Positions 11,985-29,097 of a stretch of DNA of 64,000 nucleotides are shown here, one piece after another. The stretch spans positions 28,396,001-28,460,000 of the forward strand of contig NC_135766.1 in the NCBI RefSeq assembly GCF_052425735.1. The letters are read 5' to 3'. Both the position numbers and the translations under genes were made by a program. The notes under the pieces were generated by a model. It saw only the letters and a list, made by a program, of their open reading frames with translations, was not told the DNA's origin and made no database searches. Each line of letters starts with the position of its first letter. Position 1 is the first letter of the stretch. The DNA comes from Oculina patagonica. Lineage: Eukaryota.

Positions 11985-14900
11985 ATGAATCCTGCATCTT
12001 CTTCACTGTCAGCTCTGCTGATTTTGGTCGTCTTTGGAAATCTCTCTTTCGCAGTGAAAGGTAAGGCGTTGATTATTTTCGTCATTGTGAAGAGTTATTT
12101 TGCATTTTCCATGTGTTTCTTCATTGAAAATTGAGATGCGTTTATGTTGACTGTATCTCAACAAAATTTGATCAAGATCTTGAAATTTTGCAGTTTGCCG
12201 ATTTTCCTGCTTTTGAAATCGATTTGCTATCATTTCAAATTGTTTCCTTTTGTCCTTTCAGTTTTTCCTTTCGCGATTTATCACCAGGGCCTTTTTTTTA
12301 CAAGGAAATTGACGAAAAACGTGTAATGGCAGAGATCTCGCTTTCGTAATGCGCAACTTTGAATTCGGCATAGACTGGCAGAGTCCTTTCCAAGGAATGA
12401 GTTTCTTTCTAATTCTGCGGGTTACTGAGTTCATCTTTTCGGAGTTAAATTCGCTTCTACCGTTATCATTGAGACAACGATTTATTTTTAATTCAGATAC
12501 ACTCATGAAAACTCCATCACACGCCCCCTCCGTGAGTAGATTCTTTGCACTCGACATCTTATAAGATAACAGAAATCAATGACAATCGTTAGCTGTTGGG
12601 ATTGAACTTAAAGGCTGTTTGCATGTATCAATCTTTCTATTCTTTGTGCTTCATGCTATATATGGTTCCCATTCATGCATTAAGGTCTCCGTCATTATAT
12701 AGCTCGGTACACTCGTACGAATTTCGGCTCTACAATCTCCTTAGCGTAAACCAAGCAGAAAATTGTGTACATTATTGCCGCATTTCAGAGAATGTCCTAC
12801 GTTGCAAAATTTGTTTCAGTAGCTCAGTCTTGTATGAAAATGCAAACACGCCCCCGTTAAGGATCACATAATCGGAAAAATACACATAAAAGCGTTAAAA
12901 TGCTTGGTAATGCTTTACTTTCGGGATTCAAAGCTGCAGTTGCTGTTTGTCGTTTGCTTTGCAATCTCCCTGGGATACAAAAATTCATTTTGGTCCATTT
13001 CTTTCAAAAGTTGTTACTTGACAATTAAGCTCACTCTGGAGTGCGCGGATTCGACACAGATTTCCGGGTCCGGTTTAAATAACATTTCAAAAGAAAAACT
13101 TAAGCGAAGATTTTTAAGTGCCGTTCAGCTTTTCTATTAAAATCCTGTTACCCGTTCCTTACGCAAAATTCTTTGTAGTTCCTACCTCAAAGACATAAAG
13201 AAACTGACTAAACGCGAGAATATTCTTAACCAAAGGCATATTTCCACTGTCAGGATTCAAGGGGGGTACTGTGTATCTTTCTCTCTCTTCTTCATCCTTT
13301 GCATATCTGGTTTCCCGCACTCTCCAATTCAGTTAATTATTTGGCTCTTCAGTGTATTTGCATTAGACTGTCTGCTTTGATAATCCGTTGGCTAAAACCC
13401 TGCTAGATCACCTTTTCCTCGTGCGCGTCAAAAAGCGTCGATTTATAACTGAACCGTAATGGTCCATAATGAACCAATACCCAATTGTGTCGAACAGATG
13501 TATACTCAATAGGCCTTCAGCATTTGTGGGGATTTTGATGCACAATATTTGAAATCTTGACCCATAAAGAAGTTATATTTAGCATGTCTGTCACATCCGA
13601 CAGATGATGCGGAAACTAGAAAAAAACAACAAGGCAGCATTTGGTCGCGGAGAGCCGTTATCTACGTCACACGACACAAATCCGATACAAATCTACCCAG
13701 GTGTCTGAAAAGACTGGAATAATAAATGTCTTCACGCCAGATTCGCACAAAATACCCCTCTTAGAAAATAAGATACATTGAGACGGAAATATTTCTAACT
13801 GAAGTTTGCATCTGCGTGACTATGAAGCAATAGCAAAATATAGACTTCACGTTCATGCCACTGACACGTTTGTCATTCGATTTTTCCGTTGGCTCAATAA
13901 GTGTTCATATAAGATATAATCCTCTCTTTTCGTGATAAATGCTATTTATGTATAGAAACATGCTTATACAGAGTTGACCTTTGGCTCTGGCTATCATTTG
14001 TTCTGATTGTTATCCTCTTGAAAGACCTGAAATAGCCATTTCTAACATATGGGGCTAAGATTACATTTACATACAGACACACAGTCACGGTCACAAATAA
14101 ATTAAATTAAATTTCAATTAAATTTGTATGCGCAACTATATGCATCGATTTATATTTTCGGTGGTACGATTTACATCTGTAAATTATTACTTTATTTATT
14201 ATATTCATGATGATAGGTACCTGCACTGCACTGTATTTACGTGGGACTTCAAAAGGAAACAAAAAAAAAAAAAAATAGATGGGTTAAGTGCACAACAAGT
14301 CCAACCATAAAGTGATACTAACTCCACAGAAATCCGAAAATTTTCTCTAGTTCATGAGTGTTTTTATCCGATTTTTGAAGAGCAGATAATGATTTACAAT
14401 GCCAATTTTTTTTTTTTTTACGGAACATCCTTCAAACATTTAACAGTATTTTCTCTGGAAGCAGTAAACATTGAAAAAAATGGCCATTGTAACAGCAAAC
14501 ACTAAAAATTATGGACAAATAGTACTTAACACTTAACCTCATTCAGACCCTCTTGAAGATTTGGTGTAGGAATTGAATTTGCATTATCTAAAAATTTATC
14601 CGGCATGCCTTTTATTTCGCAAGTGATGTCGGTATTTAATGTGCGCGCAAGTTTCTGTTGATTGACGTAATTGATGAGGAAACTTATTTGATAGGTCATG
14701 AAAACACAGGACCACACGCCCCTTATCAGGGGGGGAAATCACGTTCAACTTTTATTTTCAGTAATGCTGGTCAATCTTATGCTGCAGTCTAAGTTCACTC
14801 TTCGTTTCATTTTGCAGTGCTTGTGTGGTGCTAGTATAATGCTTATACTTCAGCTACAGCAGAAACATATTCAAATATTTCATTTCACCTGAAATGTATT

Positions 14901-17900
14901 CCTTATCTATTGCACATTAATTGTCGACACGTGTAACCGCCTCTTTTGACGTCGATAGATCAGAGAAAATAAGACCTCTTACGCAAAATTGCTTCCACCA
15001 ATTTGGATATTTACACCAGAAATTTACGATTTCGTGATCAAACCACGCTTTAGACCGTTTATAGTTTCCTGTTATAAAAAAGGACAAAGATTGTTAGGAC
15101 AAGAAGAGACCGTGAGAGGGAAAGAGGGGGGGAGGGGGGGGGGGGGGGGGGGTGTGTGTGTGTGTGTGTGTGTTTTTCAACGCTCTCGTGAGTCCTTATC
15201 AACCTAGTAAAATGGCCCAGCTCACAACGAGTCTCTCGTAGCTCAGTTCAGGTTAGAGCGCCCAACCGGTATCTGGGAGGCCATGGGTTCGATTCCCGTC
15301 GGGGACTTAGAATATTTCTTTATCCCCTGCTCGTGTCATGTTGAATACTTCATCTTCATCTTCCATTTACTCTTATTATTTACTATTGAGAATTTGGATA
15401 CTGCAGGCATTTCTATCAGGAACGATGACATCAGTCACTTTTATGACCTTGACTACTTGAATTTGTTGATATAATCCGTTCAGTGATTCTAGCGGCCTCG
15501 GTGGAAAACCCGCAGTCCACAATCTCGCAGTCGACTTGATTCGCAATTTTAATCAGTTTAAGTCATAACTTGAATATGTGTGATATCACAGTGATATCGT
15601 CCTAACACGCGACTTTGAAAGACACCGTATTCTGCAGAACTCTCGATATAGACGGACCATGTGTCCAACAGTCACGATTTAAATCGTAGAAAAAAAGGTC
15701 ATAAGATGAAATCGTCACGTTAATCGAAACGAAATGACGTGACTCAAGTTTGCCTGCGCTGCAATCTAAGATCACTATTTGTTTATTTTATGGGGGCTAG
15801 TCACGTCTCGCCCTGATTTTCAAAATGGCAGTTTACTGCCAATTTTAGCGCACGTTTTTATCCATGAAAGTCTTTTATTCAGAATCAAGGATACCAAAGG
15901 AAGTGAAAACTCTCATGCAGATCACTATTGAAGCGATTTTAAAAAAACAACAAACGTCTTGCATTTACTATAATCATTTGCCATGGATAGCTTGGCATAC
16001 TGCATGCATGTTTTCGACATAAACAATGGGATCAGTCACTTTTATGACCTTGACTACTTTATATAATCCGTTCAGTGATTCTAGCGATCTAGATGGAAAA
16101 CCCGCAGTTCACAATAACAAGAACACTTGACTTACTGCAAGAATCGGCTGAACCACAACTTAAATAAAGCGACGTTTCTGTGATGTTGTCCTCTCGAAAA
16201 CGAGCTAATCGAGGCAAAAATTTGCTGAGGACTGGCCTTGTGTTTATCAGTATATGCTTTGTAGGCCTTTTTTTTGACTGTTTATTTATCGGAGATTTTT
16301 ACAAATGAAATGTACTTGTCGTCACGCCACATTTCGAATCATTTTCAAAATGGCGGTTTTACCGCCAATTTTACAACGTTTTTGTTTGTGTAAGTTTTTT
16401 TTCAGAATCAAGATCACCAGAAGCAGATAAAATTCTCACTAGTTAACAGATTTAAATTAAAACATCTTTCATTTACTCTTATTATTATTCATTACTGAGA
16501 ATTTAGTTACTGCAGGCATGTCTATCAGAAACGATGACATCAGTCACTTCCATGACCTTGACTACTTGAATTTGTTGATATAATCCGTTCAGTGATTCTA
16601 GCGGACTCGGTGGAAAACCCGCGGTCCACAATAACAATAACACTTGACTCATCGTAAGAGTCGACTTGATTCGTAATTTTAATCGGCTTAAACCATAACT
16701 TGAATACGTGTGATATCACAGTGATATCGTCCTAACACGCGACTCTGAAAGACCCCGTAGTCTGCAGAACTCTCGATATAGATTTACCACGTGTCCAACA
16801 GTCACGATTTAAGTCGTAGAAAAAAGGTCATAAGTTAAAATCGTCACGTTAAACGAAACAAAATGACGTGACTCAAGTTTTTTTGTGCTGCAATCTAAGA
16901 TCATTCTTTGTTTATTTTATGGGGGCTAGTCACTCATCACTCGATTTAATTCGATTGCAATTGCAAAAAAAATGTACTTGTCGTCACGCCCATTTTAAAA
17001 ATGGCGGTTTACCGCCAATTTTAGCACGTTTTCACATGAAAGTCTTTCATTCATAATCAAGAATACCAAAGGCAGTGAAAACGCTCCCCATTGAAGCGAT
17101 TTAAAAAAAAAAACAAACATCTTACATTTACTATAATAATTTGCCATGGATAATTTGGCATACTGCATGCATGTTTTCATAAACAATGGGATCAGTCAAT
17201 TTTAGGACTTTGACTAAGCGATGTTTCTGTGATGTTGTCCTTTACGCACAAAAATCCTCAGAAAAGACTTCGTTATCCGCAGACTGCTCTCGCAAACGAA
17301 CTAATCGAGGCAGAAACTGCCGAGGAATGACCTTGTGTTTATCAGTATGCTTTGTAGCCTTTGCAAAAATAAATCATTAAAAGAACAACTCGCTATGAAA
17401 AAAAATGGAACCTAGAGCAAACTGCTAATGAAAGGCAATTTATAAAAAGCAAATAACACCGAGTAGTATACATACACGAAGAGCAGTTTTAGAAAACTAG
17501 TTTTTGAAAATAATTTGCCAACTATGATTTAAATGGAATCGAGAATAAATAGAAAAAAAAAAACATTTTCTGAATCAAGTGGCACTGCATGGTTTCAACT
17601 TGGCACTGTACATAGGCGGCAGAGGGGGAGGGCAAGTGCAGCATTAATTAACTTGGTTTTTAAGAAAACAAATCTCTACTCTGGCCACATTAGCTGCGTC
17701 ATCGGCGACTTCAGATCATACATCTTTTCCCTCGGATACGACATCTAAAGAACAATCCAAAAAGAACCACGAAGCAGGATCGTCTTAATATGCCGGGTTA
17801 TGCACAAATCGATTACGGACGCATTGACACTGTTAAAAGGCATTTTGGGAAATTTTAGTAGGGAATGCGCCTTCGGGGGAGATGAGAGGGGTATGCGCTT

Positions 17901-20900
17901 GACTTGAAGCGAAGTGGTTCTCCCCACTATGTCCCCCGCGACACCCTAGTGACACTTTTCCTACCACTAGGCAACCAGCCCCAACCCCTGCCCCATTCTC
18001 TCCAAAAGTTCTTTATGCAAAACATTAAGGGAACCCTGGATTTCTATTGTTTTTATACTTGAGTTTAATGAATGTCATGCGCTTTTTACATAAGCCTCTG
18101 GCTCGGCTGGATAGGAAGCTCGGAGCGTAATGTCATCCCCTGCCATGGCCCTTATAAATTGATTGATTAATTGATTGGACACAAACTTTGTGTTTTTTTG
18201 TTGCTTCTAAAAGGAATTCCATTGCAAACTGGACACTTAAACATATCTGAAACGCTACAAGAATGGGGTTGCAGCGGTAGCTGTCTTTCTTTACAACATT
18301 GTCGATTACCACGTTGTGGAAACGTTGTATTTCCATTTACATTTAGTGGATCAGGAACGGTACGTATATATATCGTAATGAATATAAATGGAGGGTCTGA
18401 ATGTGGGTACCACGATAAAACTAAACAGTTAATATTTGGCCCTGTAACATGAAACAGTTAGATTTTTGGCATTTAACTTTAACAGTTAAAAAATCACTAT
18501 AACAGTAAATTTTATCCAGAAAGAAACAAAAACGGCTTCAAAAAGGTCAATATCATTTTGTTTAGTATACCAAGAAGTTTTCGGACATTTTCCGACGACT
18601 TCCATTTTCGATCATATTGGAAGATTTTTTAAGATACTGAAAATTCCCGAATGCGACCGAAGATGTTCGAAGACTACCGAAAATTCTCAAAGAGAAAATC
18701 AATGATGTCCGAAGACTACCGCAAATTCCAAAGAGAAAACCAACCAACAGACTGGTTGGTGAATTTTGCGTGGCCTCCCTGGTGAAAATTTTAGCTCTCA
18801 GGTCATTGTATTTTGTTTAAAAAAATGTAAGGGTTTTATTTCTCCCAAAGACTGGTGCTTTGTTTATGTACTCAAACGACTGCGTCTGGATTAACTGCAC
18901 GATCTTCAGTTTTTCTAGGTCAGGGAAATGAAACACATTATTAGATGTTTGCTTGCCCTTGTAAAGCTTTCATCTAATTTGTGTGAAACATCCAGCGGTT
19001 TCCTTCAGCTCCTCCACTCCCAAATACAGTAACAAAATCAACAAAAATGGGTAAAAACTCTAAGTTGTCAAATGAGAGAACTGAAGAGATAGAGAACTCT
19101 GACATTTTTGTATCTTACTCGGATTGTTAGGTCCAAGTTCATGTAACATTGAGCCATGGTGAGCAGTTTTCACGTGTTCACTCGCCTGCTGCTGTGTGGG
19201 TTGAATCAGTCAGTACACGTGGATTTAAGGTGTGTGCACGTGAGTCAGGCATCGGAACAAATGGAACTGGAGTCCTTAACTGGCTGGCTTTCCAAGATCA
19301 ACCAAAATTGACACATGGAAGCGTTAGTTTTAATGGCATTTGGACAACAGAAACTAAATGCGAGAAAGTCACATTCTCTCAGGTAAGATGGTATGATTTG
19401 TTATAGATGTTTATCTCGAAAATGTCTTTTAATTGTCACACTTTTATTTCTATGAACATATTGCAGAGCTTTGGTGGAAGACCTTCTGTGTTTGTGTCAG
19501 CTAAGTACACACGTGACACAAAGCCTGATGACGCAATGTACGTCTGGCTGGAGAATGTAAAACCAGGAAGTTTCGAAGTGTGCCTCCGAGAGTTCTTGGT
19601 GTTTGACGGCAAACATCAAGACACTATTGTGGTGGGTACACGACTTGTAAAATTTTCGATCACCCAAGTTAAAATATTTTAACCGTTTAAAAGATATTGG
19701 TTGAATGCTTATATACGGAATAATAGCTTCGAATAATTAACAACTATTCCATGAGCGCATGTTGGATATGATGTGGTAGTTAGCTATAACTATGTCATAT
19801 CCAACATGCGCTAGTGAAAAAATTGATTTATTAGAAACGCTAAAATAATGGTAGTATTTGAGCACCCCAGCTATTTCCGTTGACGCGTAGACTCCTACCA
19901 TATTTGCAGTTCATAGTATATGAGCTCATATTTCATGGCCTGTGAACCAATCAAGACACAGGAATTGCAATATACCACAGCGTACAGCTACGTTTATCAG
20001 GCACTACATGAATTAATATTCCTCACAACAGTTTCTCAATCTCGTCTTTCCTTGCGTACACTTAATATACAGTAAAACAAAGTCATTTTTCAATTGAATA
20101 ATGAACTTTGGCCTGCTTGAAGTATATACTTTTTAATTTCATCGTGAGTGATTCTTTCTTCCCAGGACTGGTTCGCATTCACCAGCAATGGGTCCGAGCT
20201 AAATTTTACGATGACAGGGGAAGTGTACTTCCCCAACAGCGGCAGTCCTACGGCGGACAATAATTATGGCTTCTGTCATGTAAGTGGCTTTGATAATCTT
20301 CAACAACATCATCCCAAAACTGAAATGGAGGCCTTTAGGTTATTACCCACTAAATTAAAAATACATTTTCCCAAATCACGTGGTTTCTCACTACATGAAA
20401 ATCGTGGAAATAAGCACTAGGTTTAGATTTGCAAAACACCCTTTTTTAGAAGCGCTTATATTCAGGAGGGCTTACATACAAGGCGCTTTATTGTGCAAGT
20501 TTACCTTTAAAAATGTTCTAGGTTTCAGTTTTTACGGGATACTACGACTGTCTATTATATAATTTATCTCTCTAAACATGTCGGATAAAATCCAAAAATG
20601 CCTCTCAGTCTTTTCAAACATTCTCTAACAACGTGAGAGGAGAACAAGTTAATAAAAAAGTAAGCTTATCTGCTTATATTCAGAAGGGCTTATTTCAGAA
20701 GTGATTTTTGAGGGATGGGATTTGGACGATTGGGGGAGGGCATGGGGAGGAGTAAGGGATGGTTTTTCGGGAAGTGGTTTTAAGAATTAACGGTAGTTCT
20801 TTTCCTATTTTTCATGCTCAGGAAGTTCAGTATAACACGACTTTTTATAAGTCCCCGGCTGTGCTAGTCTCTGTCAGTCATCAATATGACCGACAAGTGA

Positions 20901-23900
20901 AAAGTCATGTTCCGTCGGAGAATAACCTGATAACAGCTTGGGTTGAGGTAGGGTTAAATGACGATTGTTAGAAAAGAGTTATTGAGTCCAAATCAATTGA
21001 CTAAAAAAGGTTGACATTTTCTTTATAGGAAGTTCGTCTGACATCCATGAAAATTTGCGTTAAGGACTTATCTGGAACAGGAAGTCAACACGACCCCCTG
21101 ACAGTCAGTTATGTTGTGATTGGAGGTTGGTAATAAATTGAATTATGATATCTTTTATTTGAAAAGTTTTCCATGTCCAAAATTAAAGCAATTAAGAGAG
21201 ATTGAGTTTCCGTGCTATGGCGAAGGTGACTATTTTAATTTCCTTTCATTAATTTTAAAAGAAAGCTCAAAATGAATATCCCTTTATTTTCCATCTACAG
21301 ACTTGAATCCATGTTTGGGCGTAGTGTGTGAGTCGTTTGGTGTCTGTAAGACCTACAGTGCACATGAAGCTCGCTGCGTGTGTAACGAAGACTGCCCTTC
21401 CTATCAGGATCCAGTGTGTACCGCCAATGGTACAACATACGACAACAAATGTCTTTACGAGCTTAGCTTCTGTAAAGAACATGACAATAATACTGTTTAT
21501 CACCCAGGAAGCTGTGAGGGTAAGTGAGCAGTTATCATGATATAGCTTACGAGGTCTAGAGAAGGTCTAGAGAAGGTTAACGAAAGGGCCATTCGCTTTG
21601 TTTTCAAGGACAAGAACACCCCTTACAGGGACCTTCTACAAGCCCTTGGCCTGCGAACCTTGGCCGAGCAACGAGTATACAAAATTGCTAGCTCGATTTT
21701 CAAAACAATAAACGGTCCTAGCCCTCCCTGCTTGCGTGAGCTGATACAACCTAGAAGCTATTCCTACAACTTAAGAGGACAAAATATTCTCAATCTACCT
21801 AACGTGCAAACTACCAAGCACGGACTCAAATCTTGGCGATATTTCGCCCCCAAATTATAAACTTCAATATGCTGTAAAACCTTTAGAAAGGCGTTAAATG
21901 CTGTAGATATTAGTCGTCATTTGTAATTTTTAATTAATTAAATAATTGTATATATTCTATAACTTTTAGCTCATTTTTAATCAGGAAATGCGTCGCACAT
22001 ATTCAAAGCTTTAAAGCTTTGAAGAATTTTATTCACTTTATTTTATTTTATTTTATTTTTATTTATTTTTTATTTATTTATTTTTTTTTCATTGTGGCTT
22101 ACCTGTAAACTAGCTGGTGCGTTCCCGCAGATTTTGCTAACCATATCTGCGGGACGCATCGAAACCATAGCTAAGTGTAATGACCACATTGAACATTGTA
22201 TTATATTGTATTGTATTGATTTTACAGTTTTATTGATTTTGAGTACTTTGCAGTAATTTTGGGCGGTTTTCGGACGTTTTGGAAACATTTTTGAAATCCA
22301 AGATGGCGGAGCCAAGATGATGGCTGTTATGACATTATGATGTCATTGTCACGTGATGTGATGTCATCATCCCTCGTGACGTATACCAAAAGATAGATTT
22401 TTGTACATACTATGTATCCTCCACGTTTCGTTGTGATTGCTTAAATATTCTGGAAGTTACGGAGGGGTGGGTTTTCACGTGAGTGTCAATTCCATTAACA
22501 GTCTTGTCGGTAATCAAATTTTCTTATCTTCTTATTTATGACTTTAGTAGGACCAAGGTATAAATGCAATACAATTCAGATGCTAAAATGGTGTAGTGGC
22601 CCAATGTGATAAGGTTTGTAGCTTAATAAAAACTTTTCCATTCAATAACAGGCTTTCCAATTGCGCATGGCCGTGTAAAGCTTCTTCGAGTTCCCAAATG
22701 GTCTGACTCAAGCTGCAAGACAGTGGTATTCCCACCATACCGGTTCTACCCGGATAAACAAGTTCACGTACAAATAACACTGAATCACATGAATTTGAAT
22801 GACTCGGTAACAGTTCACCACGCTATCACCTCGTGGACGGAAAATGTGAATACACGAAATTTTACAGTCTGCGCCATGCAATCTGGGAGGAATGGAAACA
22901 ACTTTAACCCATTTGCAACTGTGGAATGGATGGCGTATCAAGGAGCAACGCAAGAAGTAATGACGGGAATAATCAGCATTAAAAAATGGTGGTCTGGAAC
23001 AAATTGCGAAGATATGACGTTTCCAAAGGTTTGCTTGGAATACATCTGTATTAGAAATTCAACACACCTTACAGCTAACTGCATGCAACATGGCGCAATT
23101 TTCTTATCAGCAGTCATCTTATGATTAATTTCTCTGTTTTTCATTGCAGGACAAGTTTAAGGAGGCGCCTGTAGTTCTGGTGACGTCAGAGCATCTTAGG
23201 ACTGGTAAAGAGTATGATGCCTCGCTGATCTGGACAGAGGATGTAACCAAGGACTCATTTAAAGTCTGTCTCCGGGAACTACAAAACTTTGATGGAAAAC
23301 ATGAAGATATTAATGTGGTATGTGATCAAGTGATTTATTTTTCGAAATGTTTTGGAATGAACGAAATGAACAAAAATCCTCTCCTTAAAAATTAATGAAA
23401 CACTTGCTTTGATCTGACGTGTTAGGCTTATTGTATTCCAGTTGAGTAGTCCTTTTGGTAGTCTGGGTACCGTACGGTGACATAAATTATATTCGGTCAC
23501 GAAAGGATGAACGTTGTGAAGCTAATTGCTCTTTGTATTTATCGCTAATTCATTGATCAGTTTAGCTACAGTTGAAGGTTACAAGGTAATAAAAACATAA
23601 AGCCCTTTTCATTTGAGTGTCGTAAAACCAAAGTAATTACTCTATAGCTAGCAAATCACAAAGGGCAGGATAATCCATTGAACCAATGAAGCAAATGCAT
23701 GTAGCCAGCACAAAGCTCGGGAAAAATGTATTAGGAAGTCCCGATTGGGTTTGGTTTTCTTCTGATTGGTTGAAAAAGTGGCGCGAGATTTTAAAACCAA
23801 TCAGAAAGCGTAGCAATGCTAAACCAAAACAACAAGTGATCACTACTCTATCATTGCCATTTCCACATTTTACTTGCAGAACTGGATGGCGTTTACGAAA

Positions 23901-26900
23901 CTACACAAGCCACTCTTCACTGAACATGGCTCTGTGAAGTTTACAAACACAAACCCACCAACAGATGATAACAACAACGCTTACTGTGAGGTAAAGTTAC
24001 AAAATTAATGTACTTTGGGTAACAAAATACTTCTAGATACAGAAACATTAATTTATATTTTAATTGTCCCCGCCTTAATTAACGATCATTTTGTGAGCGA
24101 TTTGAAACGAGGATAACGGTTCAGACGACTGATTATAATTGCATGCAGGAAACATTTCCATTCTTAAGCTCCTCTGGATTTTTTTCTGTCATTACCTCTT
24201 TCCCCGAAGCCTCAAAACAATCATTTTTTTGTTGTTGAATAGACTATTGTATCTTACCTATTAAGGAGGAAGTCTGAGGGTTAAATAGGATAGGGAGGGT
24301 ATTGCGGCGTTTGGGCAAAAGAGAGGTGAGGTGTTTGGGGGGCGGGGGGGGGGGGGGGGTTAAACAGTAGAGTGTTTATGGCATTTCGTTGTTATCTACA
24401 GTTTGTGCCGTTTACACGAAGTTATAACATTACACCATCAGTCCTGATATCAGCCAATCACAGCACAACGGCCAGCGGAAACTCGGCACCAGTTCACAAC
24501 GGTATTACTACGTGGATCGAGGTAAGTTGTCACATTGAAGAAAATCACTTTAATATCTCTTACTGAGAGACATAATATAACTTTTCTGTTATAAACCTGG
24601 CTTAGGGAAACGGCCATTTGATATCGACAATATAAATTATCAACAGAATAACATTGTCTTGATGAAAAGTCATGTTTCAATGAAATATATAGAAAAAAGC
24701 GATCAGGTCTAAGAGAGTTACAATGTAAGAACTGCTATTCCAAACTATCCAATAAGGTTGTAGATTTTGGAAACTACGCTTTGCAGGCTAAGAACTAATT
24801 TATTGTTGTTATTTTCGTAACTGCAGAAATCATGGTTTTGTTAATATTGTATGGCATTTGATTTGCAGAACATGAACGCTTCTGGATTTAGAGCCTGTGT
24901 TAAAGAGTTGTACGAGACCAGATATGACCCTGTGTCAGTGAATTATGCGGTCCTTACAGGTAAGTAAACACTGCATAACACGTGGTGATTTCGAATATAA
25001 TTGTTTGAAGACTGAAATCAAGAGAAATTACCATGTAAGGGTAGAAAATTCATTCTATCAGACGCACATTATGGAGATCTGTGGACTATTGGCTGTTATA
25101 ACCGATATTTACACAAAATAGCAAAACCGTAACAATGGACATATTACTAATAGTATGTTGCACACTTTACCGTTTCGAACTGTTTTAAGGAAATGACACA
25201 AATGAAACAGTTAAGCCTTTTAGATTTTTTAGCGCTGTTTGTTAATATACTAATAGCCCAAAAGTGGAAATATGAACTTTCGAAATACAACGAAAGAATT
25301 TAAGCAGACCTTAGAGTAGTCTCATTCAGAAGAAACTGAGTGCTAAAATACATTTGTTACTTGCGCAGATATTTGTGAACCTGGATGGAGTTATTTTAAC
25401 GGCTTCTGCTATTTCACGAGCGAAACCTGCACAAACTGGACCAATGCGCTATCAAAATGTCGGCAAGCAAACTCCGTTCTTGTTGATGTGAACAGCAATG
25501 AGGAAAATGTTTACATCCAACACAGACATAATGGCGAGAAATCGTGGCTGGGATTGAACGACAGATCAACAGAAGGTGACTTTACTTGGGCGGATGTTGG
25601 ACGGGCGAACTTTACAGCTTGGGCCAGAAACCAGCCTAATAATTTCAGAGGAGAAGATTGTCTGCACGCCCTTGGTTTGAAGTTGAACTACGAGTGGAAT
25701 GACGTGAAGTGTAGCGACTGTCATCAGTATACTTGTAAGAAAGGTAAGCTTTAAGTTTTTGTATCCCGTTGTTTACACAGATACGATAGAAATTAGGCCG
25801 AGCTGACATATATCCAAAATTCAACATTTAACGTCGAGAATCTTTAAAAATTGTCACTCAAATGCAGCTAATAGGAATTAAGATAATCCGCGTAACTAAC
25901 CGATGAAAACTGATAATCGATTAGCAACTCGATGAATCAATATTAATCGATAGTATTTGTAAATGCAGAATATTGAAACTTTTCGATAACCGACGATTAA
26001 ACAATAGTTACGCTTAGCTATTCTTCAATTACCTCCAAATGTTATTGACTGATATCGATGAACATCGATCGGTCGACATCGATTTCATTCACCATCGACA
26101 AAATGTCTAGCAATATTTAGTGATAACCACCTAGTTGGATATTTTCTTGCTGCTTCACCAAATTAATTTTCAGAAGAAAAAAAAGCTTAAAAAATATACA
26201 GACTTGTTGGTTGGTTACAGACTTGTTGGAGCTCGGATACTGGCAGGAAATAAAAATAATAATAAGGGCACTGACTAGTTCACCAAACCAAATCAACTGA
26301 ACCATGCAAGCCAAACCAAACCTAACCTAACCTAACGAAATCAAAATCAACCAAACCAGATAAAGAAAGGTTTAACTGAAAGTAATATAATTTACTCGAT
26401 TTTTAAACAGTTATCAATTAAGGGAGTAAAAATTATATCCCTAGACTAACTTATTATAAAATATAATTACCGCAACGACGTATGGAATCAAGTTATAAGG
26501 TTGTTCCGCAAAAAGTGTCATATAATGTACTGTCAATAATGTTGTACAAGTAGATAAACTGATGACTTCAGTGATATTTTACCTATCTATCCACCAGACT
26601 TAAATGAATGCCAGAGAGAGAAGAATTACTGTCACAAGCTGGCCACTTGCGCTAATGAGCGCGGTTCATACACGTGCACTTGTAACAATGGATACGTTGG
26701 AGATGGCTTTGATTGTTACCATAGTTACGCGGGTAAGATTTATTAATTAATAGTGAAAGCAGTTGATGAACAGTCCAAAGCCTTTTTGTTAAAGACATTT
26801 TCATTACAGCGCCTTGTTTTGACCCTTAAATTAGAATTCAGTTAAACTGAACAAAATCTTAATCTTATTGTTCTAGTGGAATTCTAACTACATTTTCTTC

Positions 26901-29097
26901 AAAAACAATTTTTTAAACAAGCCTTCTCGGGAATTGAGTTATTTATTAATATTTCTTAATTTCCGGCTTTGAAACTTCAGAGAAACGAAGCCATTTTGAT
27001 GACAGCTACGACGAGAAGCCACTGTACACAAATTGGTCACAGTGTTTAATAGCCCAGCCAATCAGATGGCAGCATTTGCATAAGCACAGTAAAAATATTC
27101 TACTAATTGTGAATCAGACGAGAGTGTTACTTTGGCCACTCTTTTGCTAGAAAAATCTTTGTTACGTTTAAACATAAGCGTGAAAGGGTGGCGACATTCG
27201 TAACGTAACGATAACAACATGTAATGGTGAGATAATGCATGTGCAAATTTACATATCAAGGCAGTGCACTGAACATTTAATTTTATCCTGACAAGCTTTA
27301 ATTTTATTGAAATTGTATGTTTGCTCCCATTTAGGTTTGGGATACTCAGCAATCCTAGCAAATGACGATAATTACTTGAGTACCCTAAGCAACTGGTTAA
27401 AACCTGTAACCCAAAGTAAATCTTCGTACTGGAATCGTTGCTACCGAGCAACCGTAAATGGTTGGTCTTCTGGAACGTTCCACTCAAACTGTGACGACCT
27501 GGGTCCTACTGTCACAATCGTTCGTGTAGGAAGGTACATATTTGGAGGATATACGAGTCTCTCATGGAGTAAGTAATATGAAATACTTTATCTCTTTTAA
27601 TTTTCAATTTAAGGAGCCACATATGTCAAATGTGCTCTATGTACGTGGAAATCGCTGTGTCTAAGGACTGGAAAGCCATATCAACCATAACTGATTTTCA
27701 CGGGGTTCTCTTTACCCTTGGAGAAAGGCTAGAAAACTCAGTTGAGAAAAATTCCTCCCACATGTCCCGGCTCTCGAACGGAAGTGAACTATCCAAATGA
27801 CCCATCTTAGTCTGCTCATCAGCTGTCAATTCAGTGACCCTTCCTTGCTATTTAAAAAAAAAACAACACTAATTACGGGGATCAAGACCCGCTTTATAGG
27901 TGATTGCGAAGGAAGGGGCCCCATGCAAAAGGTTTCGGCCCACCCCTAGATCCACCTCTAAAATGAAACTCACTTATATAGCAGTTATTAAAAGTTGTTC
28001 CTAAGCCGTACAACTGTAATCCTATTTTGTCCAAGCCTGTGAATACGGCCACTTCTTAAAGCGGCTGTATAAGCAGGATAATTATTTTGTTTTTGAAAGT
28101 TATTCGCTTTTGTGAATTAACTATACGCGTTGTGTCAAACAAGTGAAATTTATCGTATCTGCGCCAGTAGCTGGTTGGAGTTCAGCGGCACTCCTCTGTA
28201 CTCGAGTCAGCGGTGTTTATTGTTGTATAAAAGATTGCGGTTGTTCCTAGGCGACCGCCATCTTTGTTGTATCTAGTTCTTGTTACGAGGAGATTTCGCT
28301 TGTATTAAAGTTTACGCTTACGGATCATCGGGTCCTAGTGTGTTTATTCAAACTACTGGCGCTGAAAAAAATCAGACAATTTATTTACTAGGAGTGCAAT
28401 TGTATTCTTTGTCGACTGTCTTTAGAAAATTTACTCTGCACACGGAAACCAGGGTAGATGAGTTTCTGTATCTGACAGGTATGCTAATTCAAGGGGTCTG
28501 AAAGAGGTAAACCGCACCCCAAACAAACTTGCAATTATCTCTGGTTCTGTTATTCGAACGGTTAACATTACTATATGTCCTTGAGACAAAATTTCAGGGG
28601 AGCACGACACCGTACGATGTTCAGGAATTATGACGAAATGTGTTTCACCAATCTAATTAACCTTATAAAATTCGTTCGATTTGAAGCGGTCCAAAGTGTT
28701 ATTAAGCATCATATAAATGTATAACATATGTTCCACTGTGTTTTTCTATTTAGGCTACAATTGTATCGGATATCGGTACGATTCAGCAGCATTCCTGTTC
28801 TCACTTGTTAACAAGCCTGGTTGGCAACCACTAAAAATATACCAAACAGGACAGTATAGTTATCAAAAAAGTTACTCTATCTACACTTGCTTTTCATATG
28901 GACCAATATTTGGAGGAGGAAATGATTTCTTAATTGCAGACTACGCGTCGTCAAGCACAAATTCCCACTCAAACCTTGGTTACACATATGGCCCGCCATC
29001 TGGTTACAGCTATAAGTCCTCCTTCGCTGGTTCATTCCTGGCGGGTAGTTACAACTTTCAGCCTGACGAAGTGGAAGTCTTTTATGAAACTACGTGA
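11985..29097 (+). CDS. Gene B: secreted mosaic protein (6 H-type-lectin-like repeats, follistatin/Kazal, C-type lectin, Ca-binding EGF, TLDc), 1049 aa
   Basis: 17 exons, all GT-AG and phase-compatible, 3150 nt with no internal stop: 11985-12060, 18214-18359, 19131-19382, 19467-19631, 20166-20279, 20822-20947, 21029-21125, 21301-21519, 22652-23028, 23150-23317, 23880-23990, 24402-24521, 24869-24959, 25369-25743, 26598-26732, 27335-27568, 28754-29097. Exon 1 encodes signal peptide MNPASSSLSALLILVVFGNLSFAVK; its link across the 6.1-kb intron is the least certain. AATAAA at ~29141. Confidence 0.85.
15200..15360 (+). mobile_element. Fragment of a tRNA-containing interspersed retro-repeat
   Basis: GTAGCTCAG..GGTTAGAGCG..GGGTTCGATTCCCGTCGGGGA with flanks matching the inverted copy at 37135-37270. 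Confidence 0.65.
15361..17362. repeat. ~1.1-kb direct tandem duplication in intron 1 of gene B
   Basis: 15361-16270 aligns with 16467-17362. Sub-repeat ATCAGTCAC(T)TTTATGACCTTGACTA occurs at ~15430, 16031, 16539 and 17191. Confidence 0.85.
18214..21125 (+). CDS. Gene B exons 2-7: first triplet of H-type-lectin-like repeats
   Basis: Three ~95-105 aa repeats with pattern G.V...C..V.F...F...P.V.V...W(V/L)E.V...F.VC.RE...(N/D)W.AF. Confidence 0.7.
21301..21519 (+). CDS. Gene B exon 8: follistatin/Kazal domain
   Basis: PCLGVVCESFGVC...ARCVCNEDCPSYQDPVCTANGTTYDNKCLYELSFC...HPGSC is the 10-Cys follistatin pattern. Phase 1-1 exon. Confidence 0.9.
21555..22220 (+). mobile_element. 5'-truncated CR1/L2-type LINE 3' fragment in intron 8 of gene B
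   Basis: LEKVNERAIRFVFKDKNTPYRDLL...YNLRGQNILNLPNVQTTKHGLKSWRYFAPKL resembles a CR1/L2 ORF2 C-terminus. Followed by a 3' UTR with stem-loop and (ATTGT)n tail. Confidence 0.75.
22652..24959 (+). CDS. Gene B exons 9-13: second triplet of H-type-lectin-like repeats
   Basis: Repeats align with the first triplet (e.g. SFEVCLREFLVFDGKHQD vs SFKVCLRELQNFDGKHED) and share intron positions. Confidence 0.7.
23608..23840. repeat. Abundant short interspersed repeat (CCAATC-rich family)
   Basis: GAGTGTCGTAAAACCAAAGTAATTACT...TTCTGATTGG..GAAAAAGTGGCGCGAGATTTT. Related copies at ~45960-46170 (reverse) and 60088-60660. Confidence 0.7.
25369..25743 (+). CDS. Gene B exon 14: C-type lectin domain
   Basis: CEPGWSYFNGFCY...W..A..KC...ENVYI...WLGLND...W...QPNN...EDC...WNDVKC...YTCKK. 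Phase 1-1 exon. Confidence 0.92.
26598..26732 (+). CDS. Gene B exon 15: calcium-binding EGF domain
   Basis: DLNECQREKNYCHKLATCANERGSYTCTCNNGYVGDGFDC. Phase 1-1 exon not shown in the ORF track. Confidence 0.9.
27335..29097 (+). CDS. Gene B exons 16-17: C-terminal TLDc domain
   Basis: WNRCYRATVNGWS..FHSNCDDLGPTVTIV..IFGGYT / AFLFSL..GPIFGGGNDFLI..FLAGSYNFQPDEVEVFY. Intron at the same position as in gene A. Confidence 0.9.

Follow-up and report, generated by a model that had tools for sequence, protein, structure and literature searches.

We analysed a 64,000-nucleotide stretch of eukaryotic DNA (about 38% G+C; hereafter, the window) from Oculina patagonica, a facultatively symbiotic stony coral of a genus that hosts Breviolum, and focus here on the element at positions 18214-24959 of its forward strand. 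This element is the N-terminal two thirds of the gene of a LePin-like secreted lectin. It encodes six homologous repeats in two sets of three, and the unit that was duplicated is the triplet. In structural models, the repeats adopt the H-type lectin fold as six domains, each about 95 residues long, and each triplet probably forms one rigid globule, i.e., a fused pseudo-trimer of H-type domains. The element consists of 12 exons, each entered through an AG acceptor and left through a GT donor, which join into a single open frame of 662 codons. Its borders are exact, with an AG acceptor preceding position 18214 and GTAAGT following position 24959. With 100% identity over 661 residues, the translation of the gene model matches residues 27-687 of a protein of Oculina patagonica with 1,049 amino acids, annotated as "hypothetical protein ACROYT_G032291" (XP_078381929.1 / KAL9963116.1; hereafter, P0267), and the element encodes residues 26-687 of this protein. 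The whole gene spans positions 11985 (signal-peptide exon) to 29094.

We numbered the repeats R1 to R6 (P0267 residues 26-129, 130-218, 219-325, 399-495, 496-585, and 586-687, respectively). They are 89-107 amino acids long, are homologous, and align over their full length. Each has a conserved cysteine in strand 2 and in strand 5, a W-x-E motif in strand 4, and a terminal W-x-A-F/Y. The pairwise identities are highest between repeats that occupy the same place in their triplets (R1/R4 35.6%, R2/R5 40.9%, R3/R6 32.4%), all other pairs being at 17-27%. Profile-profile comparisons with HHalign, using 66-69 orthologues per repeat, link all 15 pairs with probabilities of 96.7-100% and give the top scores to the same three pairs (R2-R5 204, R3-R6 159, R1-R4 111). 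Aligned as wholes, the two triplets share 35.9% identity across 281 columns. Triplet 1 has five introns, and four of them coincide in column and phase with the four internal introns of triplet 2 (after TFSQ/TFPK, DTIV/DINV, FCH/YCE, and WVE/WIE); the fifth (18359/19131, after GSGT) has no counterpart in triplet 2. Since R1/R4, R2/R5, and R3/R6 are the closest pairs and these four introns are shared in column and phase, the duplicated unit is the triplet. An earlier note on this DNA had described six homologous repeats arranged 3+3, with R1 like R4, R2 like R5, and R3 like R6, and had named the triplet as the duplicated unit. The identities and the HHalign scores agree with the arrangement, and the shared introns add to them in favour of the duplicated unit. 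The note had also placed introns at equivalent sites, with phase-1 ends: the four sites are indeed equivalent, but all four are in phase 0, and phase 1 is confined to the outer limits of each triplet and of the Kazal exon that separates them.

By sequence comparison, triplet 2 arose long ago as a copy of triplet 1, since a protein with the typed order from R1 to R6 (P0035) already exists in the sponge Oscarella pearsei. In this protein and in an unnamed eukaryotic one (P0141), the order is R1-R2-R3 ... R4-R5-R6, and every repeat matches best its own type. The 3+3 layout with its Kazal spacer has been kept from sponge to coral. We counted the order of the repeats in the 136 family proteins that start with a methionine and have at least 250 residues, and found R1-R2-R3-R4-R5-R6 in 75 of them.

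The repeats could be identified by Pfam and by their predicted fold. The H_lectin family of Pfam (PF09458) matches P0267 with 66.2 bits (cut-off 24) in three stretches. Among the repeats searched singly, R5 scores 31.2 bits, R2 23.9 bits, and R6 22.3 bits, and whole repeats are required, as the searches with single exons gave only sub-threshold H_lectin matches. HHalign ties R1, R3, and R4 to the other repeats with probabilities of 96.7-99.8%. The profile of R3 reaches Helix pomatia agglutinin (HPA) by sequence at E 0.004, within a range of E 0.004-0.1 for the R3 and triplet profiles, which is weak. We then used AlphaFold2 to model residues 26-687 (662 residues, 69 sequences, predicted local distance difference test [pLDDT] 83.4, predicted template modelling score [pTM] 0.59) and triplet 2 alone (residues 399-687, 123 sequences, pLDDT 90.7, pTM 0.90). 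Both models have six strands in each repeat. Structures were compared with VIA-align, all the query structures being predictions. The predicted R6 superposes on HPA and on Helix aspersa agglutinin (HAA) with Z 8.0-8.9 and a root mean square deviation (rmsd) of 2.6 Å over 91-92 of about 100 residues. The predicted R2 matches discoidin II (Z 6.9) and the octocoral lectin SLL-2 (Z 6.2), and the predicted R5 matches domains at the C-terminal end of phage tailspikes and pyocin fibres (Z 7-10.8), including gp49 of phage LKA1 (Z 8.7-10.8). Two other candidates for the identity of the repeats, apextrin (ApeC) and the D8C domain of uromodulin, were dropped because both Pfam and the fold favour H_lectin; D8C is confined to the C-terminal end of some paralogues.

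Folded alone, triplet 2 has a pTM that points to a compact body, since domains of uncertain mutual placement do not reach such a figure. The linkers between its repeats, from the last strand of one to the first strand of the next, have 6-7 residues in the list of predicted strands. We scanned 48,161 solved chains with the model of triplet 2, independently of Foldseek. Single repeats match H-type lectin-like domains. All the matches that extend over the full model are single chains in which three beta-sandwich subdomains surround a (pseudo-)threefold axis. They align 174-210 residues and are the V domain of PCSK9 (residues 454-681, with 186-195 residues aligned), the monomeric dUTPases of Epstein-Barr virus and pseudorabies virus, the dUTPase-like ORF10 of murine gammaherpesvirus 68 (MHV-68), and 5kca_A, which we take to be a single-chain construct of the C1q trimer of Cbln1. 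The search of the PDB by Foldseek with the 662-residue model gave Kazal-dominated and weak PCSK9 matches and could be interpreted only for the triplet folded alone. Among the cluster representatives of AlphaFold DB, the triplet body is found with template modelling (TM) scores of 0.6-0.8 over residues 1-288, in proteins that include "H-type lectin domain-containing" ones, peptidases, a PEP-CTERM protein, and a phage tail protein; triplet 1 matches these modules as well. The ESMFold models of the ESM Atlas contain it in Planctomycetota, Pseudomonadota, Bathyarchaeota, and Mucoromycota (TM 0.71-0.75, rmsd 3.2-3.7 Å). We read the triplet as a covalent trimer because H-type lectins are homotrimers whose ligand lies in a groove at the protomer interfaces (PMC6048534). 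Three unlike domains joined by such linkers would pack as one rigid globule, the covalent counterpart of the homotrimer of HPA, discoidin, and SLL-2, and this globule would resemble other single-chain pseudo-threefold beta-prisms, e.g., the V domain of PCSK9. The threefold axis and its correspondence to the trimer interface of HPA are predicted.

Several observations weigh against this reading, some at the level of the single domain and others at that of the whole body. Searched alone, R1, R3, and R4 have no Pfam match, so that automatic annotation shows two to three H_lectin domains and not six. The sequence profiles of R1, R4, and R2+R5 retrieve no solved H-type lectin among the PDB sequences. 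R4 is the most diverged repeat; it matches the kinds of pyocin-fibre and phage-tailspike domains that R5 matches, but with no more than Z 3.8-3.9. The whole-body matches in the PDB have Z 3.9-5.1 and rmsd 4.6-6.4 Å, a range that the tool calls common. There are 18 annotated members of the family (P0163, P0195, P0204, and 15 others) with a signal peptide, a lone R3, the Kazal domain, and R4-R5-R6, lacking R1 and R2. These lone-R3 forms are either a real class that has one free H-type domain or a recurrent error of gene models and, if real, they imply that not every domain needs a triplet. Finally, AlphaFold may over-pack paralogous repeats as if they were a homo-oligomer, through their shared co-variation.

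The last point is part of the case for an alternative in which the six domains would fold independently, as beads on a string that gain avidity through their number alone, or trimerise across chains, the compact triplet being an artefact of modelling. The capacity of AlphaFold to over-pack homologous repeats is one argument for it; others are that the fold of each repeat is complete by itself (R6 covers HPA residues 1-99) and that some family members are annotated with four or five repeats. We nevertheless find it improbable, in view of the pTM of the triplet and the length of the linkers. The same three-domain body is present in the models of distant relatives (11-24% identity), both from ESMFold and in AlphaFold DB, and the number of repeats is 3 or 6 in unrelated prokaryotic contexts. 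The three types of repeats have also been distinct since before the split between sponges and cnidarians, which is expected if they hold fixed and non-equivalent places. The fused pseudo-trimer is thus the arrangement that we retain as probable for each triplet.

If the triplets are pseudo-trimers, the two could be packed back to back as a fixed pseudo-hexamer, like the hexamers of HPA and SLL-2. The pTM of the 662-residue model is somewhat above what is expected from fully independent halves, and the conservation of the 3+3 layout with its Kazal spacer from sponge to coral also speaks for such a packing. However, full-length relatives from AlphaFold DB superpose badly on the 662-residue model (TM 0.41-0.44, rmsd 11-22 Å), even though single triplets superpose well. 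There are also prokaryotic six-repeat proteins that lack the spacer, and single-triplet proteins are common. We therefore regard a fixed pseudo-hexamer as very improbable. Because the pTM is 0.59 and the relatives align one triplet at a time, the two triplets appear, in the models, to be flexibly tethered by the follistatin/Kazal domain and not packed as a hexamer.

These results bear unequally on what the earlier note had said of the structure. Its assignment of the repeats to the H-type lectins is upheld by the PF09458 match above threshold for the protein and by the superposition of the predicted fold on HPA, HAA, discoidin, and SLL-2. Its background on interface sites in H-type lectin trimers and on SLL-2 is in agreement with the literature (PMC6048534, PMC8290866). 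The proposal that each triplet is a fused heterotrimer gains from the prediction of one compact body, from its pseudo-threefold neighbours, and from its recurrence in AlphaFold DB and the ESM Atlas, whereas the geometry itself is a prediction. The idea that two triplets mimic the hexamer finds no support in the pTM of the whole or in the superposition of relatives, which is of one triplet at a time.

The triplet can be compared with two kinds of assemblies. The homotrimeric H-type lectins (HPA/HAA, 2ccv and 4q56; discoidin I/II, 2w94 and 2vm9; SLL-2, 3wmp) have the same six-stranded beta-sandwich (Z 6.2-8.9 over about 90 residues) and belong to the same Pfam family. They consist of three identical chains, or of six as two trimers, whereas each triplet of P0267 has three diverged domains (17-27% identity) in one chain. 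The ligand grooves expected between neighbouring domains of P0267 cannot be identical, because the three domains have diverged to this extent. The conserved disulfide pair in every repeat is another difference from the homotrimeric lectins. The V domain of PCSK9 forms a double-layered beta-prism whose internal symmetry is pseudo-threefold and in which disulfides connect the layers (PMC6294395). Like the triplet as predicted, this domain, the APC-beta domain of Toxoplasma PLP1, and the herpesvirus monomeric dUTPases have three subdomains around a pseudo-threefold axis in one chain, and the PCSK9-type pseudo-trimers share with it the six-stranded subdomains with disulfides inside each subdomain. 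The triplet aligns to PCSK9 residues 454-681 over 180-195 residues, with Z 4.0-4.7 and an rmsd of about 6 Å. With 5-8% identity and low Z, the comparison gives no indication of homology to the V domain of PCSK9, and the likeness is best described as an analogy of architecture, not as homology or membership.

The module is also predicted outside animals. The same three-domain body is predicted in proteins of prokaryotes, fungi, and protists (A0A2H0VY65 and others; ESM Atlas clusters; DUF7431), with TM 0.6-0.8. Sequence relatives of this kind are retrieved by phmmer with E down to 1e-11 and show 3 or 6 matched stretches; likewise, either 3 or 6 repeats were counted in each of ten metagenomic proteins from the more distant relatives. 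The partners of the triplets in the non-animal proteins are peptidases, Big domains, MACPF, or phage tail proteins; unlike those of the coral, these triplets lack the Kazal spacer and the typed order. One of these relatives is a 406-residue protein with three tandem H-type lectin repeats (L001:3313-4533) on the gene-dense, prokaryote-type contig Ga0606682_0004930, next to genes for a short-chain dehydrogenase, a phosphoribosyltransferase, a Ser/Thr kinase, an MgsA-type AAA ATPase, and a FliMN_C-domain protein. In an ESM Atlas cluster, Mucoromycota proteins with DUF7431 (PF24209) and MACPF match the whole triplet with TM 0.74. On the basis of these models, DUF7431 may be a triple H-lectin-like prism. 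If so, its association with MACPF would parallel that of MACPF and APC-beta in PLP1 of Toxoplasma.

We searched 1.8 billion representative proteins with the largest exon of the element (exon 9) and obtained 294 relatives. Across the searches, more than 100 LePin-like proteins were seen in Scleractinia, Octocorallia, and Actiniaria. The front end of the family is constant (triplet, Kazal, triplet, C-type lectin, EGF), and its last domain is variable, being uromodulin-type D8C, fibrinogen-related, TLDc, CUB/SRCR, F5/8 type C, or pentraxin. One 32-Mb chromosome of Oculina carries at least 22 tandem copies that share more than 90% identity with one another. In Nematostella vectensis, the precomputed Pfam annotation of P0301 and P0303 lists Lectin_C and EGF besides H_lectin, and for P0301 also Kazal.

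The family takes its name from LePin of the soft coral Xenia, a secreted protein that contains H_lectin, Kazal, C-type lectin, and EGF domains (Hu et al., 10.1101/2022.12.13.520278). LePin marks the endosymbiotic cell lineage and is located on the mouth's surface and on free algae; RNA interference showed that it binds algae and promotes the formation of alga-containing cells, and LePin-like proteins were noted in other symbiotic anthozoans (10.1101/2022.12.13.520278). This tested member of the family is in keeping with the symbiont binding that the earlier note had in view. P0267 has the domains that define a LePin-like protein, namely a signal peptide (hydrophobic leader, residues 1-25), no membrane anchor or transmembrane segment, and H_lectin, Kazal, C-type lectin, and EGF domains. 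It differs from LePin as published by ending in a TLDc domain. The three peptides used to raise LePin antibodies fall on conserved motifs of the family: the R6 loop that follows strand 3, the "P..xNNxAYC" loop of R3/R6, and the junction of the C-type lectin and EGF domains. Two of them match P0267 at 9/15 and 7/15 positions on the corresponding motifs, and the third, for which other members have the motif in R6, matches at 5/15, which is not convincing. In other family members, from octocorals and scleractinians, the peptides match at 10-12/15 positions. A search with the Dendronephthya member returned no sequence named as Xenia and no exact match to a LePin peptide; P0267 is about 41-43% identical to the Dendronephthya protein P0232. 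Given the shared domain set, the signal peptide, and the placement of the LePin peptides on family motifs, we assign the gene to the LePin-like family by sequence, the comparison with LePin itself being made through these three peptides only. The text of the LePin paper does not mention six repeats, a 3+3 duplication, or a pseudo-trimer.

The diversification of the recent copies was analysed in about 16 Oculina paralogues, most of them more than 90% identical. In the tail of EGF, linker, and TLDc (P0267 residues 813-1049), 52-75% of the sites are variable, against 22-43% in the lectin repeats. Variation among these recent paralogues is not concentrated in the loops of the lectin repeats, the TLDc tail being what varies most. 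Because the tail exceeds the lectin repeats in variable sites, the sequences place recent diversification in the C-terminal domain and not in the H-type triplets.

What the triplets bind can be approached through the conserved motifs. The only part of HPA that can be aligned by profile is residues 21-62. R3 and R6 have P-T-x-D-N at HPA P23-G24-R25-D26-N27, and the loop P-T-D-D-N-N encoded by exon 11 aligns to HPA residues 23-28. HPA Asp26 is presumably a residue that contacts N-acetylgalactosamine (GalNAc). R2 and R5 have instead an almost invariant F-D-G-x-H loop. These unlike motifs in the three types of repeats at least fit non-equivalent grooves. The ligand of H-type lectins lies between neighbouring protomers, so that three different grooves (R1|R2, R2|R3, and R3|R1) would be expected in a fused heterotrimer; they would be fixed at 1:1:1 and free to diverge separately.

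The same compact prism could also have lost lectin activity and use its grooves for peptides, proteins, or lipids. There is precedent in CofB, whose H-type lectin trimer binds a peptide in the expected GalNAc pocket and does not bind GalNAc (PMC6048534). The V domain of PCSK9 and APC-beta of Toxoplasma PLP1 are non-lectin pseudo-threefold prisms, a module of the MACPF proteins of Mucoromycota matches the triplet (TM 0.74), and R1 and R4 are too diverged for Pfam. In contrast, LePin, a member of the family, behaves as an alga-binding secreted lectin, its ligand being chemically undefined, and R3 and R6 keep the P-x-x-D-N loop that aligns with HPA residues 23-27. We thus consider a non-lectin prism unlikely and favour a glycan-binding pseudo-trimer.

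By analogy with Xenia LePin, the best reading of P0267 is that of a secreted multivalent pattern-recognition protein and putative glycan binder. Its two triplets, together with the C-type lectin domain and the variable C-terminal domain (here TLDc), would make a multivalent secreted recognition protein that would bind glycans of microbes or of symbiotic algae. The C-terminal domain would supply a second specificity or a link to an effector. The role of this gene in symbiosis is putative and is itself a point for caution, as the analogy extends from LePin to a TLDc-type paralogue that is one of at least 22 near-copies.

The exons of the gene are all on the forward strand. Exon 1 (11985..12060) encodes the start codon and the signal peptide (residues 1-25); it ends in phase 1 before GTAAGG, and its peptide, MNPASSS...FAVK(G), is the N-terminus of P0267. 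Exon 2 (18214..18359, phase 1 entry) encodes strands 1-2 of R1 with a cysteine-rich insertion of low pLDDT (model residues 17-29). It is followed by exon 3 (19131..19382, ending in TFSQ), with the remainder of R1 and strands 1-2 of R2, exon 4 (19467..19631, ending in DTIV), with the core of R2, and exon 5 (20166..20279, ending in FCH), with the last strand of R2 (DWFAF) and the first strands of R3. Exons 6 (20822..20947, ending in WVE) and 7 (21029..21125, phase 1 exit) encode the middle and the end of R3. The follistatin-like/Kazal domain between the triplets (residues 326-398) is encoded by exon 8 (21301..21519), which is in phase 1 on both sides; its product matches Kazal_2 of Pfam (2.6e-8) and, structurally, Fstl1, follistatin, and ovomucoid. 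In the second triplet, exon 9 (22652..23028, ending in TFPK) covers the whole of R4 and strands 1-2 of R5, exon 10 (23150..23317, ending in DINV) the core of R5, exon 11 (23880..23990, ending in YCE) the last strand of R5 and the first strands of R6, and exons 12 (24402..24521, ending in WIE) and 13 (24869..24959, phase 1 exit) the middle and the end of R6.

Downstream of the element are the exons of the C-type lectin domain (25353..25742; residues 710-812; Pfam Lectin_C 9e-17), of the calcium-binding EGF domain (26597..26755; residues 813-852; Pfam EGF_CA/EGF_3), and of the TLDc domain (residues 869-1045; Pfam TLD 3.6e-20). The first TLDc exon is at 27325..27570, and its borders, like those of the two preceding exons, are approximate, as they come from tblastn. 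The last coding exon (28756..29094) is 100% identical, by tblastn, to P0267 residues 937-1049. A neighbouring gene in the window has TLDc exons (6147-6422 and 7980-8303, forward strand) with 57-71% protein identity to the TLDc of the P0267 gene, and this identity suggests that the module has been shuffled between neighbouring genes.

The introns contain some further open stretches. In the first intron (12061-18213, 6 kb), such stretches recur, of which those at 15311-15457, 16023-16127, and 17183-17377, for instance, share "TMGSV.F.TLT", and there are simple repeats, with poly-G and TG runs, near 15080-15240; all are probably copies of dispersed repeats. The intron between the Kazal exon and R4 contains an open stretch of 104 codons (21546-21857, forward strand), which we take to resemble the C-terminal tail of ORF2 of a non-long-terminal-repeat (non-LTR) retrotransposon. 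A relative from Stylophora in AlphaFold DB is named after the "jockey" reverse transcriptase, and its gene model is probably chimeric.

The family and its lectin character are already known, as are the role of one member in symbiosis and the Pfam label H_lectin. Literature searches on three, tandem, or six H-type lectin domains returned nothing relevant besides the LePin preprint, and a 2024 review of tandem-repeat lectins does not mention the H-type family. The 3+3 layout of six repeats with shared introns, the triplet as a single-chain pseudo-trimer, and the spread of the triple module outside animals seem to be undescribed. As domain searches detect two to three of the six repeats, the architecture of this anthozoan family is under-described. 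H-type lectins are usually treated as small proteins that require three identical chains to form their binding sites. If the pseudo-trimer reading is true, the fused version would show a route to asymmetric sites that evolve separately, as in beta-trefoil and beta-prism lectins. A broader proposition, which we put forward tentatively as a possibility, is that the triple H-type unit is an ancient module of bacteria, archaea, fungi, and animals whose grooves have diverged into three sites, and that the LePin family, with two units per chain and dozens of tandem paralogues, may be a combinatorial glycan reader that helps to decide on the uptake of algae and microbes. LePin is the one lectin whose promotion of algal uptake has been shown by knock-down; for this protein, the pseudo-trimer reading would provide a structural frame, and it would tell which surfaces to compare between corals that choose different symbionts.

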